From sequence record NC_019401.1: a stretch of DNA of 64,000 bases, one strand, 5' to 3'. Below the pieces are notes generated by a model. The model saw nothing but the letters and a program-made list of their open reading frames with translations, made no database searches and was not told where the DNA came from. Position 1 is the stretch's first letter. The number at the start of each line of letters is the position of its first letter. This document shows positions 5,664-62,528 of this stretch, piece by piece. A program made the translations under genes and the position numbers.

Positions 5664-5677
5664 TTGATTATAATCAA
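5664..5677. promoter_or_regulatory. FNR consensus box
   Basis: TTGAT-TATA-ATCAA, perfect match to TTGAT-N4-ATCAA, intergenic. Confidence 0.5.
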
Positions 5678-14753: not shown

Positions 14754-15044
14754 GTGAAACAATTAGCACAATTAGTAGAAAATCAAGAAAATGCAGGTCA
14801 AATTTATTATGCTTGTAATGTGCGTAATGTAATTCAGCCAGTAAGGGTACGACTAGTATCCGTTACTGAAATTTATAAAAATGTTGACCATAAAGATTTT
14901 CCATTAATGGCAGTAATAGTTTATGAAAGTGATGAAATTCCAGTACCTTCAAAATTTAATACGATTCCAATAAGTTGTACTGTATTGTTTGATACATACG
15001 AAGAAGCATCATTCGAGTTCTCTAAGTACTGGAAAATTCATTGA
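14754..15044 (+). CDS. hypothetical protein
   Basis: GTG start with AAGGA RBS. Confidence 0.65.
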   Translation: MKQLAQLVENQENAGQIYYACNVRNVIQPVRVRLVSVTEIYKNVDHKDFPLMAVIVYESDEIPVPSKFNTIPISCTVLFDTYEEASFEFSKYWKIH

Positions 15045-15071
15045 ACAAACGTTAATCAAAGTTCTGAAATC

Positions 15072-15085
15072 TTGATCTAGATCAA
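15072..15085. promoter_or_regulatory. FNR consensus box upstream of nrdD
   Basis: TTGAT-CTAG-ATCAA perfect consensus; TATTTT (-10-like) starts 30.5 bp from its centre. Confidence 0.65.
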
Positions 15086-15088
15086 TAG

Positions 15089-15120
15089 AAATACCCCGTT
15101 ATATGGGGTATTTTAATTTT
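15089..15120 (+). terminator. rho-independent terminator before nrdD
   Basis: AAATACCCC-N7-GGGGTATTT plus T-rich tail. Confidence 0.7.
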
Positions 15121-15153
15121 TAAGTGCGTAAATAAATTCACCTAAAATTAGAC

Positions 15154-16968
15154 ATGGAGAGTCGTATGAATAACGATAGATTGTACAGTGATATTAACGA
15201 GTTTTTGAACCAAAGCAATAAAGATTTACTGAATGAAAATGCAAACAAGGATGCAAAGATTGTTAATACGCATCGCGATTTACTTGCTGGTATTCTGTCT
15301 AAACATTTTGCAGAAGATATTATTTCAGAAGATTTAATGCAATGGCATAAAAATGGTTATGGTCACATACACGATCTCGATTATTTTATAAGCCCACTAA
15401 CGAACTGTTGCTTAGTAAATTACAGAGATATGTTAGAAAATGGATTTAAGATTGGGAATGCACAAGTTGGCACTCCTAAAAGTATTGGTGTTGCAAGCAC
15501 AGTACTTACACAAATTGTATTAGCTGTTTCCGCGAGTCAATATGGCGGTCAAACACTAGCACACATTGATTTTGGACTCGAACCATACGTTCAGAAGTCC
15601 TACGATAAGCTCTTAGAGCAGCAGAAGGAATTCAACCTACCAGATGAGTTCGTTGAAAAAACCCTTCAGAAAGAGGTTTATGACGCTATGCAAGCGTTGT
15701 TATACCAGGTGAATACAATCACATCAAGTAATGGTCAAACACCTTTTGTCACTATTACTATGGGATTAAACACATCAAAATTTGGTAAAATGATTACTGA
15801 TTCGTACTTAAAAGTTCACGAAAAAGGATTGGGTGTTGATGGCACAACTCCGGTATTCCCTAAAGTAGTATTCTTCCTAGAAGATGGAGTGAATATGAAG
15901 GAAGAAGATCCCAACTACGATCTTAAAGTACAGGCAATGAAAACTTCAGCTAAACGAATCTATCCTGATTTTGTTTCAGTACCATTGAATAAGAAAGTAA
16001 CTGGCAGTACTAGTATTGCGGTTTCACCAATGGGATGCAGATCATTTCTAGGAAAATGGGATGATGGCAGTACTGAAAAATATGATGGTCGTTTTAACCT
16101 TGGAGTAGTGTCAATTAATTTACCATTACTTGCACTCGAATCAAATTCTGATGGTGAATTCTTTGGCAAGATTGACTATCACATGAATATGGCATATCGT
16201 GCACAAATGAATCGTGTCGAACGATTGAAGAATACAAAAGCACGGCAAAACCCTACTATGTTTATGGAAGGTGCAATTTCCCGTCTTGATGCAGATGACA
16301 CAATTGAAAAACTCTTCTATGACGGATACGCAAGTATTAGTATTGGTTATGTAGGCTTAGCAGAATGTTCTGAAATTATGAAAGGACAGATTGTAAAAGA
16401 TTATTGCAAATCTATTCTTCATTATATGAAATATAAATGCGAGCAATTCAAAGAAGAAAGTAATATCGCTTTTAGTTTATATGGAACTCCAGCCGAAAGC
16501 TTATGCTATAAATTTGCAAGAGCAATTGAAGAAAAGCATCCTAATATTCTAAAACGTAACTTTATTACAAACTCATTCCACCAGCCAGTGTGGATTAACT
16601 CTGGACAATTTAGCAAGTTTGATTACGAAGAAGGATTTGCATATCTAAGTAATGGTGGAAATATTAGCTATGTTGAAACCCCAAATCTTTCAAATAACAT
16701 GACTGCACTAGAAACATTAATCAATTATGCATATGAAAGAATTCCGTACTTCGGTATAAATCAGCCAGTAGATAAATGCTATAAGTGCGAGTTTGAAGGT
16801 GAATTTGAAGTTGATAAAATTGGATTCCACTGTCCACAGTGTGATAATAGAGAAGAAGGAACTATGTCAGTGATTCGCAGGGTTTCTGGATATTTGAGTG
16901 CACCTAATAGTAGACCTTTCAACACTGGCAAACAGCAAGAAGTTATACAACGAATTAAACACCAATAA
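15154..16968 (+). CDS. nrdD: anaerobic (class III) ribonucleoside-triphosphate reductase
   Basis: HIHDLD, MGCRSFL, YGTPAESL, CxxC...CxxC, RRVSGYL glycyl-radical motif; true start may be 15166. Confidence 0.97.
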   Translation: MESRMNNDRLYSDINEFLNQSNKDLLNENANKDAKIVNTHRDLLAGILSKHFAEDIISEDLMQWHKNGYGHIHDLDYFISPLTNCCLVNYRDMLENGFKIGNAQVGTPKSIGVASTVLTQIVLAVSASQYGGQTLAHIDFGLEPYVQKSYDKLLEQQKEFNLPDEFVEKTLQKEVYDAMQALLYQVNTITSSNGQTPFVTITMGLNTSKFGKMITDSYLKVHEKGLGVDGTTPVFPKVVFFLEDGVNMKEEDPNYDLKVQAMKTSAKRIYPDFVSVPLNKKVTGSTSIAVSPMGCRSFLGKWDDGSTEKYDGRFNLGVVSINLPLLALESNSDGEFFGKIDYHMNMAYRAQMNRVERLKNTKARQNPTMFMEGAISRLDADDTIEKLFYDGYASISIGYVGLAECSEIMKGQIVKDYCKSILHYMKYKCEQFKEESNIAFSLYGTPAESLCYKFARAIEEKHPNILKRNFITNSFHQPVWINSGQFSKFDYEEGFAYLSNGGNISYVETPNLSNNMTALETLINYAYERIPYFGINQPVDKCYKCEFEGEFEVDKIGFHCPQCDNREEGTMSVIRRVSGYLSAPNSRPFNTGKQQEVIQRIKHQ

Positions 16969-16977
16969 GGAATTATC

Positions 16978-17421
16978 ATGATACATGATAACATAGAAGT
17001 AAACTGCAATCATTTACTGAACAGAACTTTACTAGGATTTTTGCCAGTATTTGATGTAGAGTACAATTCAATATCTTACTATTCAGTTGAAAATATTCAC
17101 CCGAATCGTGAATATGAAAGGGTTGTTCCATGTTATCATTTAGAAGTATCTGATGATTGGGTGTGTGAGCAAGAACATTTCTTTATGCAGGAATGTTTAC
17201 CACCAAAATCTCGCGAGAATTTAGTACTTCTCCACGAGATTTATCGTGACGAATATATAGATAATTTCACTAATAAGAAATATATCGTTATATTCGTTGG
17301 GTGTGATGATGGTGATAAAATTATGCGTTTCAAAGATCATAACGATGCTGTGAAGTTCTTAAACGGAATTTCATACTATGATGAAATCTTTGATAAAAAT
17401 GAAATGTTAATGCTATATTAA
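16978..17421 (+). CDS. hypothetical protein
   Basis: 147 aa ORF with AAGGA RBS. Confidence 0.75.
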   Translation: MIHDNIEVNCNHLLNRTLLGFLPVFDVEYNSISYYSVENIHPNREYERVVPCYHLEVSDDWVCEQEHFFMQECLPPKSRENLVLLHEIYRDEYIDNFTNKKYIVIFVGCDDGDKIMRFKDHNDAVKFLNGISYYDEIFDKNEMLMLY

Positions 17422-17439
17422 CATATTCAAGGATGAATA

Positions 17440-18183
17440 ATGGCAAAATTGACAAAGCAAGAAATTGCAAATCACAATAAAATTCTGGATTTAATAAACT
17501 CAGATAAAGTACTGACATTCGATGAAAAATGGTTTATTCTTGAGAACTATCACGAAGGTGCAACCAATATTAACTCCGCTGCTGGAGCATTTTTTACCCC
17601 AATATACTATTCAAGAGATTTTTGTTTAGAAGTTTGGGGTGATACTGTAATTGATATGTGTGCCGGAATTGGATCTTTATCATTTATGGTAGCAAATAAG
17701 TATGATCCAAATGATATTCCTAGTCAGATTGTATGTGTTGAATTAAATCCAGAATATGCAGAAATTGGTAAACGAATAGTACCGGAAGCTGACTGGATTA
17801 TTGCAGATGTTCTATCGTATGAATCGCCAATTATGTTTGATCAAAGCATAAGTAACCCACCATTCGGTCGTATTAAAACATCTGATGTTAAAGATTTATC
17901 ATATAAAGGTGCAGAGTTCGAATTTAAAGTTATCTCAAAAGCATCCACATTGTCAAAATACGGTACTTTCATATTACCTCAAGGAAGTTCAGGATTTAAA
18001 TACTCTAATAACAGATACTATGAAAGATGTGAGACTGATAAGTACAAAAAGTTTAAAGAACAAACTCAAATAGAATTACATCCTGGTATTGGAATTGATT
18101 CATCCGTTTTTAAAGATGACTGGAAGGGTGTGAACATTATTACTGAAGTATGTGTTGCGGATTTCTCAGGAGAATTTCTATGA
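17440..18183 (+). CDS. amino-DNA methyltransferase (NPPF type, likely m6A)
   Basis: GAFFTP, DMCAGIG (motif I) before SNPPF (motif IV). Confidence 0.85.
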   Translation: MAKLTKQEIANHNKILDLINSDKVLTFDEKWFILENYHEGATNINSAAGAFFTPIYYSRDFCLEVWGDTVIDMCAGIGSLSFMVANKYDPNDIPSQIVCVELNPEYAEIGKRIVPEADWIIADVLSYESPIMFDQSISNPPFGRIKTSDVKDLSYKGAEFEFKVISKASTLSKYGTFILPQGSSGFKYSNNRYYERCETDKYKKFKEQTQIELHPGIGIDSSVFKDDWKGVNIITEVCVADFSGEFL

Positions 18184-18653
18184 ATTTCCAAACAATAGTA
18201 AAAGATGATTTAATCAATGGTACTGGTGTTAGAGTAAGTTTGTATGTTTCTGGATGTAGTCATGGATGCAAAGGATGTTTTAATGAATCTGCATGGGATT
18301 ATCGTTCAGGTGAACCATTTGGCGAAGAACAAATTAACATTATCAGACGCGAATTATCCAAACCATATGTAGAAGGTCTAACACTACTTGGTGGAGATGC
18401 ATTGATGCCTAAAAATATCAGTACTGTTATAGAACTTTGCAAAATAGTAAAATCGGAATATCCGAACAAAAATATTTGGTGTTGGACAGGTTATACTTTA
18501 GAAGAAGTAAAAGAAAACCACGCTTCTGAAATTTTAAAATACGTTGACGTTCTTGTGGATGGGGAGTTCGTTGAAGAACTAAAAAATCTAAAACTCCCAT
18601 TCCGTGGCTCAGAAAACCAACGAGTACTAATAAAAGGAAAAGATTATGACTGA
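18180..18653 (+). CDS. nrdG: anaerobic RNR activating enzyme (radical SAM)
   Basis: GCSHGCKGC (CxxxCxxC), LGGDA, DVLVDGEF, FRGSENQR. Confidence 0.95.
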   Translation: MNFQTIVKDDLINGTGVRVSLYVSGCSHGCKGCFNESAWDYRSGEPFGEEQINIIRRELSKPYVEGLTLLGGDALMPKNISTVIELCKIVKSEYPNKNIWCWTGYTLEEVKENHASEILKYVDVLVDGEFVEELKNLKLPFRGSENQRVLIKGKDYD

Positions 18654-18822
18654 TAAGATTATCTATCAAAAAAAATTTGATGGGAATATGATTGAAGAAC
18701 TAGACCCGTATGATATTTTGAACAGTGATGATATTGAAACTGATGCTTTTGGTGATGCTCATGGAACATTTACTGTTACTGTGACTTACACACCACCAGA
18801 TTATGATCCGAATGAAGAATAA
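18646..18822 (+). CDS. small acidic protein (not in ORF track)
   Basis: 58 aa, MTDKIIYQKKFDGNMIEELDPY...; AAGGA RBS; ends just before a terminator. Confidence 0.6.
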   Translation: MTDKIIYQKKFDGNMIEELDPYDILNSDDIETDAFGDAHGTFTVTVTYTPPDYDPNEE

Positions 18823-18845
18823 GCACCCGCATGGGTGCTTTTTTT
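18821..18845 (+). terminator. rho-independent terminator
   Basis: AAGCACCC-GCAT-GGGTGCTT plus T run. Confidence 0.85.
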
Positions 18846-18859
18846 GTTTATAACCCCAA

Positions 18860-61982: not shown

Positions 61983-62528
61983 ATGAACAAATTACAGAAA
62001 ATTTTAACAGAACTTACTCCAGAATATTCATATCGTGTAAAATTTGCGTGTGAGCCAAGCTCCGAAGAATTACATAAAGTCGTCGCTAGGCTTACAGATC
62101 GTTATGATGCTTTTGAAGTTGGTCCATTAAAGAAAACAATTTTCCAAGACCGTCCTATTGATTTTTATAATCTAGATTGTGGCGAAATTTGGATGTTCGA
62201 TTTTAAATGCCATCGTGGTGTGCAACCACAAGTACTATTGTTTGAAATCGGTAGTCTATTGAAATGGTCGGAATCATTAATTCACGTTAGAAATAATTTA
62301 GACCCATATCAGGAAGAAATTTCTGATTCTGAAGATGATATTGAATTTGATGAATACGAACCACGTCTTTTAGACCCTGAATATAAAGAAGTTCCAGAAG
62401 TTAATGCTGAGGAACTAGGTGGTCAGGGTCGTGCAGATACTGCGGTTAAAGATGCATTAGACGATTATAAAAAAGGTAAAACACCATACGCAGAATATAT
62501 GTCTGCTGGATTTGGTAAGAAGGGGTAA
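61983..62528 (+). CDS. hypothetical late protein
   Basis: 181 aa, GGAG RBS. Confidence 0.75.
   Translation: MNKLQKILTELTPEYSYRVKFACEPSSEELHKVVARLTDRYDAFEVGPLKKTIFQDRPIDFYNLDCGEIWMFDFKCHRGVQPQVLLFEIGSLLKWSESLIHVRNNLDPYQEEISDSEDDIEFDEYEPRLLDPEYKEVPEVNAEELGGQGRADTAVKDALDDYKKGKTPYAEYMSAGFGKKG

Follow-up and report, generated by a model that had tools for sequence, protein, structure and literature searches.

Lytic phages can leave the sensing of the environment to a global regulator of the host by carrying its binding site, as do the lytic cyanophages that have PhoB 'pho boxes' before pstS and phoA and NtcA sites before auxiliary metabolic genes. The Enterobacterales are facultative anaerobes with the oxygen sensor FNR, and the FNR sites of the E. 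coli and Salmonella nrdDG operon are said, in Boston & Atlung 2003 and Roca 2008, to lie at about −64.5 and −33.5. This operon, which encodes a class III ribonucleotide reductase and its activase in E. coli and Salmonella, is activated by FNR (PMC2892513; PMC3688515), as the first-pass annotation of the DNA studied here had also stated. At its promoter, which NrdR represses, FNR has multiple sites in unusual places, and NrdR boxes overlap one of them (PMC2892513). In E. coli, FNR recognizes the consensus TTGAT-N4-ATCAA, and the site lies within ±4 nt of −41.5 in 19 of 23 FNR-activated promoters, with fnrS and ydhY at −42.5 (PMC3688515). The canonical class II promoters (narG, dmsA, nirB, yfiD, fnrS and ydhY) combine such a site, centred 40.5–42.5 bp upstream of the start, with a weak −35 element, and they need FNR (PMC3688515). 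FNR is also established in Pectobacterium and Dickeya (PMC3349551).

The DNA analysed here is a stretch of 64,000 nt (hereafter referred to as the window, to which coordinates refer unless stated otherwise), which matches positions 62001–126000 of Cronobacter phage vB_CsaM_GAP32 with 100% identity. GAP32, a giant lytic phage of enterobacteria with a genome of 358,663 bp, is a 'Rak2-like' jumbo myovirus of the genus Mimasvirus. Its class III reductase genes are arranged in the order nrdD, GAP32_139, methyltransferase-like gene, nrdG and GAP32_142 (15166–18822), without real gaps:

15156–15159, plus strand: Shine-Dalgarno sequence GGAG of nrdD, in an ACA.GGA context that is invariant in the alignment
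15166–16968, plus strand: nrdD (GAP32_138), large subunit of the class III anaerobic glycyl-radical ribonucleotide reductase (Pfam NRDD, 1.7e-160, and Gly_radical)
16978–17421, plus strand: GAP32_139, conserved phage protein within the operon (phrog_24799)
17440–18183, plus strand: GAP32_140, DNA methyltransferase-like protein within the operon (phrog_3820)
18180–18653, plus strand: nrdG, radical-SAM activase of NrdD (Pfam Fer4_12, 2e-51; phrog_626)
18646–18822, plus strand: GAP32_142, small open reading frame of 58 aa, the final gene of the operon
18821–18850, plus strand: strong intrinsic terminator, predicted from the sequence, closing the nrdD-nrdG operon

The start of nrdD is most likely the RefSeq ATG at 15166, with GGAG just upstream. 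The first ATG of the open reading frame, at 15154, is disfavoured because it overlaps the Shine-Dalgarno sequence and reads ACAAGG or ACACGG in relatives. GAP32 NrdD belongs to the short phage type of about 600 aa and is not a recent copy of the host gene.

The promoter region occupies the intergenic DNA between GAP32_137, which encodes a hypothetical protein of 96 aa and ends at 15044, and nrdD. Its elements are as follows:

15040–15071, plus strand: upstream block confined, in its conservation, to the GAP32/BF clade; it includes GTTAATCAA and a GTTRAY hexamer (15051–15056) at a constant 15 nt ahead of the box
15072–15085, no strand assigned: FNR box TTGAT-CTAG-ATCAA (TTGATCTAGATCAA), a perfect consensus at 10 of 10 specified positions, centred at 15078.5
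15088–15124, plus strand: intrinsic terminator of the upstream genes, with a stem (15088–15114) containing four G-C pairs, a T-rich tail and a predicted energy of −15 to −16 kcal/mol
15109–15114, plus strand: −10-like hexamer TATTTT (4 of 6 matches), 23 nt after the box, with a predicted start at about 15120–15121
15129–15142, plus strand: conserved TAAATAAATTCACC, 43 nt after the box, the TAAATA core of which (15129–15134) matches the T4-type late-promoter motif

The first-pass annotation had located the box, TATTTT, TAAATA and GTTAATCAA (15051–15059), and every one of these coordinates proved right; the distance of 30.5 that it gave between the centre of the box and the start of TATTTT also agrees with our measurement and corresponds to a spacer of 23 nt. 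We consider it likely, from the comparisons described below, that these elements form a real and conserved class II-type promoter, activated by host FNR, before the phage nrdD-nrdG operon.

Conservation upstream of nrdD in related phages had been proposed in the first-pass annotation as a check able to refute its reading. We compared 23 Rak2-like genomes and contigs, consisting of 13 phages (GAP32, CBB, Kaldavass, XbC2, BF, pEa_SNUABM_12, fHe-Yen9-03, fHe-Yen9-04, fENko-Kae01, Munch, Hallingskeid, EJP2 and 121Q), RaK2 and nine IMG/VR contigs; the enterobacterial hosts named across all the relatives are Cronobacter, Pectobacterium, Erwinia, Serratia, Yersinia, Klebsiella, Salmonella and Escherichia. 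The box was found before nrdD in all 23, at 81.5–96.5 nt from the nrdD start, with NrdD identities to GAP32 ranging from 94% down to 67%. Most of the boxes are perfect, and those with a mismatch have G in place of A at position 10. No sequence departs from TTGAT or TCAA, and the central N4 occurs in six forms (CTAG, TTAG, ATAG, TTAT, CCAG and TTAA). When eleven of the promoters were aligned, the only invariant islands were TTGAT.TAG.TCAA, TAAATA and the ribosome-binding site; the remainder was scrambled, the flanks were unalignable and the upstream gene differed from phage to phage. Invariant half-sites around a free N4 are the pattern of constraint expected of an FNR-type site. Because the N4 varies while the half-sites stay fixed, selection cannot be acting on the palindrome as a whole or on the GATC or CTAG sub-sites within it.

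The spacing between the box and the −10 element is conserved as well. In every genome compared, the best −10 candidate lies 22–23 nt past the box. Among the 18 distinct upstream sequences tabulated (17 plus that of RaK2), 10 have a perfect TATAAT, all of them outside the GAP32/BF clade. It stands at the position of the GAP32 −10 (23-nt spacer) in Kae01, Munch and four IMG/VR contigs (5 distinct upstream sequences), and 1 nt nearer the box (22-nt spacer) in RaK2, 121Q, EJP2 and Hallingskeid. An extended −10 (TGn, reading TGA) is present in six sequences, namely those of Kae01, Munch, RaK2 and three contigs. The −35 position, 17 nt ahead of the −10, is occupied by TAGAAA in GAP32 and by GGGACA in Kae01 (4 of 6 matches each), and by a hexamer with only 1–2 of 6 matches in RaK2, 121Q and EJP2; a −35 this poor (1–4 of 6) is what characterizes an activator-dependent promoter. 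A sigma-70 promoter scan reported no promoter on the plus strand at this region of GAP32. Assuming the usual 6–7 nt between the −10 and the start, the FNR box would be centred at about −41.5/−42.5 of the predicted start, which is class II geometry. As a different arrangement, we considered an upstream sigma-70 promoter with GTTGAC as its −35 and the box as an operator, which was rejected for want of a usable −10. A second FNR site upstream of the nrdD box was likewise rejected, as only a non-conserved ATCAA half-site is present there (15055–15059).

One point speaks against this reading of the promoter. In the GAP32/BF clade, the class II −10 is weak (TATTTT in GAP32, TATTAT in CBB and BF), is poor in Yen9 (TTGAAT) and in contig L019 (TTTTTT), and overlaps the T-tract of a terminator, yet the box is still perfect. 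This hints that in this clade the box may have a partner other than this −10 alone. The terminator hairpin in question, which was reported by the first-pass annotation (15089–15120) as insulating nrdD from upstream transcription, was borne out in our analysis, with a stem at 15088–15114 and T-rich sequence after it. Across 8 phages, compensatory double changes are seen in four of the ten pairs, and the hairpin can be regarded as a genuine RNA structure in the GAP32/BF clade. There it takes up the spacer that separates the FNR box from the −10, and its T-tract supplies that −10; in the other clades, a terminator of the upstream genes is found upstream of the box instead. From the placement of a hairpin or terminator in every lineage, it follows that the operon would be insulated from upstream transcription and would have its own FNR-box promoter. 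An Rfam search of the nrdD leader gave nothing above threshold.

We propose the following sequence of events. Transcription of the upstream genes would stop at the hairpin terminator (15088–15124). In an anaerobic host cell, a [4Fe-4S]-FNR dimer would bind the box at 15072–15085 and, placed about 41.5–42.5 bp upstream of the start, would recruit the sigma-70 RNA polymerase of the host to the weak −10 TATTTT, which is accompanied by a weak −35. Transcription would begin near 15120, and the oxygen-sensitive class III reductase and its activase would be made mainly when they are able to work. The first-pass annotation had put forward an oxygen-sensor switch that turns these genes on only anaerobically. 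The part of this proposal that invokes a class II-type promoter for host FNR is supported by the conservation in 23 of 23 sequences, the pattern of constraint and the −10 spacing. The word 'only' goes too far, since the conserved late-type TAAATA and the extended −10 of relatives could allow expression without FNR; where relatives have TGn-TATAAT, part of the expression could be FNR-independent. Takeover of the host RNA polymerase by the phage could also limit the action of FNR to early infection.

Set beside the known systems, the GAP32 operon shares with the nrdDG operons of E. coli and Salmonella a class III reductase and activase that would be under the same oxygen sensor, but differs from them in having a single consensus box at what would be the canonical class II distance and no NrdR-like box. 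The predicted promoter has the box and the weak −35 of the E. coli class II FNR promoters and, relative to its predicted start, would have their distance as well; the phage version, in contrast, is on a lytic genome, has a late-type TAAATA at an invariant distance and, in the GAP32/BF clade, holds a terminator hairpin in its spacer, the T-tract of which doubles as the −10. It differs from the cyanophage boxes in the regulator and signal (FNR and oxygen), in the hosts (Enterobacterales) and in the pathway served, which is dNTP synthesis.

The TAAATA element had been called a late promoter by the first-pass annotation; TAAATA is conserved in all relatives and fits the published late motif of these phages (PMC5259590). 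For CBB and GAP32, three promoter classes, an ATAAATA late motif and a gp55-like sigma factor have been described, with no gp33 or gp45 detected (PMC5259590). In GAP32, 36% of the TAAATA copies are intergenic, as compared with 10.7% of the genome, a three-fold enrichment. When matched against the 8-mer TATAAATA, the GAP32 element agrees at 6 of 8 positions and those of Kae01, Munch, Hallingskeid, EJP2 and Kaldavass at 7 of 8; the TAAATA core is invariant in all relatives. It is probably a T4-type late promoter, giving a second route of expression. Between the end of the box and TAAATA there are exactly 43 nt in 18 of 18 distinct upstream sequences. These 43 nt are composed as 23+6+14 or as 22+6+15, the 1-nt shift of the −10 being offset on the opposite side, and this compensation holds even between RaK2 and Kae01, which have GTGATATAAT in common. 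The distance from TAAATA to the ATG, on the other hand, varies from 25 to 40 nt.

Such a strict spacing is what would be seen if the box acted, wholly or additionally, with the TAAATA late promoter and its gp55-like sigma factor, a reading that we consider unlikely but worth setting out. FNR would then be about 61.5–62.5 bp upstream of the start, in a class I position from which only the alpha subunit of the polymerase is contacted, and oxygen would gate late-type transcription of nrdD. Besides the invariant gap, this would account for Yen9 and L019, in which the class II −10 has decayed while the box and TAAATA are intact, and it accords with the intergenic enrichment of TAAATA and with the late motif and gp55-like sigma factor published for CBB and GAP32 (PMC5259590); class I FNR sites near −60.5/−61.5 do exist, though they are rare (PMC3688515). 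The figure of −61.5 is, however, an estimate from a presumed late start, and if the perfect TATAAT at class II distance were unused, its presence in most lineages would be difficult to account for. We know of no host activator that acts on a gp55-type holoenzyme, which counts against this reading as well. The fixed spacing could instead reflect a leader-RNA element at a set distance from the sigma-70 start, and the extended TAAATAAATTCACC occurs only once in the GAP32 genome, at nrdD. A variant in which one FNR site serves two promoters two helical turns apart, a class II promoter for host sigma-70 and a TAAATA promoter for the phage gp55-like factor, suggests itself because the 43-nt gap is strict and the perfect box persists where the sigma-70 −10 has decayed; we regard it as similarly improbable. 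If it were true, the host oxygen sensor would directly activate a phage-specified holoenzyme, a thing so far undescribed.

We return to the class II-type promoter and to the protein that would bind its box. No HTH_Crp_2 or cNMP-binding domain was found in a six-frame translation of GAP32, and a phage-encoded homologue of FNR or CRP was rejected on this ground. A CRP site was also rejected, since the half-sites are TTGA/TCAA, not GTGA/TCAC. Host FNR is by far the most economical binder because the phage has no CRP/FNR-type protein, the half-sites are of the TTGA type, six of the seven recorded host genera are facultative anaerobes with FNR and the host nrdDG operon is itself activated by FNR. 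That the palindrome is instead bound by another protein of like specificity, either a phage regulator or a different host member of the CRP/FNR family, which does not report oxygen, seems to us very unlikely. These phages do encode many proteins without an assigned function and at least one predicted transcriptional regulator (PMC5259590), but the domain search and the half-sites both argue against such a binder. Moreover, the conservation pattern matches that of FNR exactly, the downstream gene belongs to the one gene class whose host counterpart is FNR-activated, and the box is kept in phages from seven recorded host genera, six of them Enterobacterales and the seventh Xanthomonas (XbC2). 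Very probably, then, the Rak2-like phages let the host signal anaerobiosis by way of FNR.

Several further observations concern individual relatives. In XbC2, the recorded host of which (Xanthomonas) is an obligate aerobe, the FNR box and nrdD region are identical to those of Erwinia-phage relatives, and the recorded host may not be its natural one. A gene for a GrcA/YfiD-like glycyl-radical 'spare part' is located inside the nrdD-nrdG operon of BF, Yen9-03/04, Kae01 and Munch (L005, L007, L013, L008 and L009), but not of GAP32 or CBB; the E. coli yfiD/grcA gene is FNR-activated at −40.5 (PMC3688515). Public sequencing runs that contain the promoter sequence are metagenome contigs, and a search for RNA-seq from infected cells found no run. 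In wastewater metagenome contigs of a related phage, the similarity to GAP32 ends just upstream of 15039 while the box is unchanged, and this break is consistent with a regulatory module of about 125 nt moving together with nrdD.

The first-pass annotation had also argued from numbers, contrasting two perfect boxes in the window with an expectation of about 0.3 per 64 kb. A pattern search of the 64-kb window did find exactly two perfect matches to TTGAT-N4-ATCAA, at 5664 and 15072, but shuffles of the window had a mean of 0.41 perfect boxes, and 8 of 100 had two or more. The whole 358,663-bp genome has 4 perfect boxes as against 1.3 expected under a mononucleotide model, and 2 of these 4 are in non-coding DNA, which makes up about 11% of the sequence. 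The excess of boxes inside GAP32 alone is marginal, near chance, and is weak evidence by itself. The argument from an excess is further undercut by the second box:

5664–5677, no strand assigned: second perfect TTGAT-N4-ATCAA (TTGATTATAATCAA), a chance match outside the system

This box is absent in all four relatives compared (CBB, BF, Yen9-04 and Hallingskeid): its position reads TTGATTATAAACAA in CBB and is unrecognisable in the other three. No −10 was found at class II distance from it. The box at 5664, being neither conserved nor provided with a class II −10, was rejected as a second FNR site.

The sequence around it has features of its own. The segment 5651–5768 shows DNA identities of 88–90% in BF and Yen9 and 78% in Hallingskeid, and contains a late-type CATAAATA, an invariant TTTTTGACTCCATGTTGTTTAT and a terminator hairpin with compensatory changes. 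It is a candidate for a small RNA of about 60–90 nt. Within this segment, CUCCAUGU is complementary to ACAUGGAG, the sequence around the ribosome site in nrdD and in several further GAP32 genes. Rfam gave nothing above threshold for the region.

The comparative counts are of a different kind. In 16 of 16 counted loci, a box with no more than one mismatch lies inside a 46-nt promoter interval, whereas the rest of the 75.6 kb from these loci contains 0 perfect boxes and 9 boxes with one mismatch (0.12 per kb). In five whole genomes scanned, perfect boxes (2 in RaK2, 0 in 121Q, 5 in Kae01, 3 in BF and 3 in CBB) are no commoner than matches to a reversed-pattern control, and the only box common to them is that of nrdD. 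Of eight other boxes inspected in the relatives, seven are in open frames of at least 125 aa, and one, in the CBB terminal repeat, looks intergenic. That the nrdD box is functionless, having arisen by chance in AT-rich intergenic DNA or been inherited as a relic, is barely conceivable: the four perfect boxes of GAP32 are near chance, its second intergenic box is a non-conserved chance match and box-plus-TATAAT patterns arise by chance in AT-rich viral DNA, as our IMG/VR scan for them indicates, but the comparative data contradict such a reading, because the 16 of 16 loci compare with about 0.006 boxes per locus predicted from 0.12 per kb, and because the box is retained to 67% NrdD identity with all the surrounding non-functional bases changed and the −10 spacing fixed. 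Among the matches listed in that scan, nrdD was downstream in 1 of 80 loci; the contigs are AT-rich and the scan is uninformative in this respect.

The intergenic box in the CBB terminal repeat (L239:1441–1514; also record position 375218) is a perfect TTGATTTATATCAA; a terminator and then a TATAAT precede it, the TATAAT by about 20 nt. Its position is operator-like rather than that of an activator site, and it is absent from the other scanned genomes.

Other regulators of anaerobic or nrd genes were considered for the nrdD region. The ArcA consensus consists of at least two direct repeats of TGTTAA-like hexamers with a spacing of 11 bp. The ArcA-like site that the first-pass annotation had placed at 15051–15059 could not be upheld: it contains a single GTTAA (15051–15055), the next repeat, a GTT that reads GTA or GTG in relatives, is 10 bp and not 11 bp away, and the block as a whole is absent outside the GAP32/BF clade. 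An ArcA site was therefore rejected. The GTTRAY block may still be functionally relevant, since it is conserved in the GAP32/BF clade despite differing upstream genes. NrdR-regulated nrd promoters have paired 16-bp boxes with the consensus ACACWATATATWGTGT. The best match to such a box had 4–7 mismatches of 16 in each promoter compared and was not positionally conserved, and an NrdR-regulated promoter was rejected, as no NrdR-like boxes were present among these promoters.

We then compared the nrdD loci of other phages. T4 has homologous nrdD and nrdG genes with the same role in phage dNTP supply, but in the T4-like phages and Slopekvirus compared, nrdD overlaps or abuts the upstream gene and is not preceded by a non-coding FNR-like box. 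The few boxes with no more than one mismatch in the 450 nt searched (IMG/VR contigs) lie about 115–300 nt upstream, mostly in coding sequence. More generally, the non-coding DNA before nrdD yielded no box with up to one mismatch in any of the T4-like, Slopekvirus, Pseudotevenvirus, rV5-like, T5-like, FelixO1-like and KVP40-like phages examined. What precedes nrdD in a T5-like phage is an ordinary, strong sigma-70 promoter. The same search in about 65 distant IMG/VR loci also found no such non-coding box. In most of these phages and loci, nrdD abuts the preceding gene. A box 86 nt before an NrdD of 46% identity (L156) was rejected, as it is inside a coding N-terminal extension.

The nearest outside relatives of the Rak2-type NrdD are those of the Stephanstirmvirinae, with 63% identity. 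Near-consensus boxes precede nrdD in phi92 (TTGACTAAGATCAA, followed after 22 nt by TAAAAT; L022:595–690) and in phage 3A1 (TTGATTTCCCTCAA, followed after 22 nt by TAGAAT; L229:604–691). From these boxes, phi92-like phages probably share the arrangement. Transcripts from the −10 of phi92 would be attenuated, as a terminator-like hairpin separates it from the nrdD start.

A full-text literature search, which did not cover the GAP32 genome paper, found no report of an FNR-controlled gene in these phages, and the CBB genome paper makes no mention of FNR (PMC5259590).

Judged by sequence comparison, the element itself is of a common type, a predicted class II FNR promoter; what is unusual is its location, in a family of lytic jumbo phages that have kept it and the anaerobic reductase operon together as one unit. 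The arrangement spans the Rak2-like genera Mimasvirus, Eneladusvirus, Asteriusvirus and Alcyoneusvirus, as well as unclassified relatives. It would offer a simple system for asking how long host activator-dependent transcription stays usable under phage sigma factors, and whether a host activator can talk to a phage late promoter. These phages are considered for use against gut and plant pathogens in low-oxygen settings, where oxygen-gated nucleotide metabolism would bear on their performance. The promoter would plainly exemplify how a strictly lytic jumbo phage delegates the decision between aerobic and anaerobic dNTP synthesis to a global regulator of its host.
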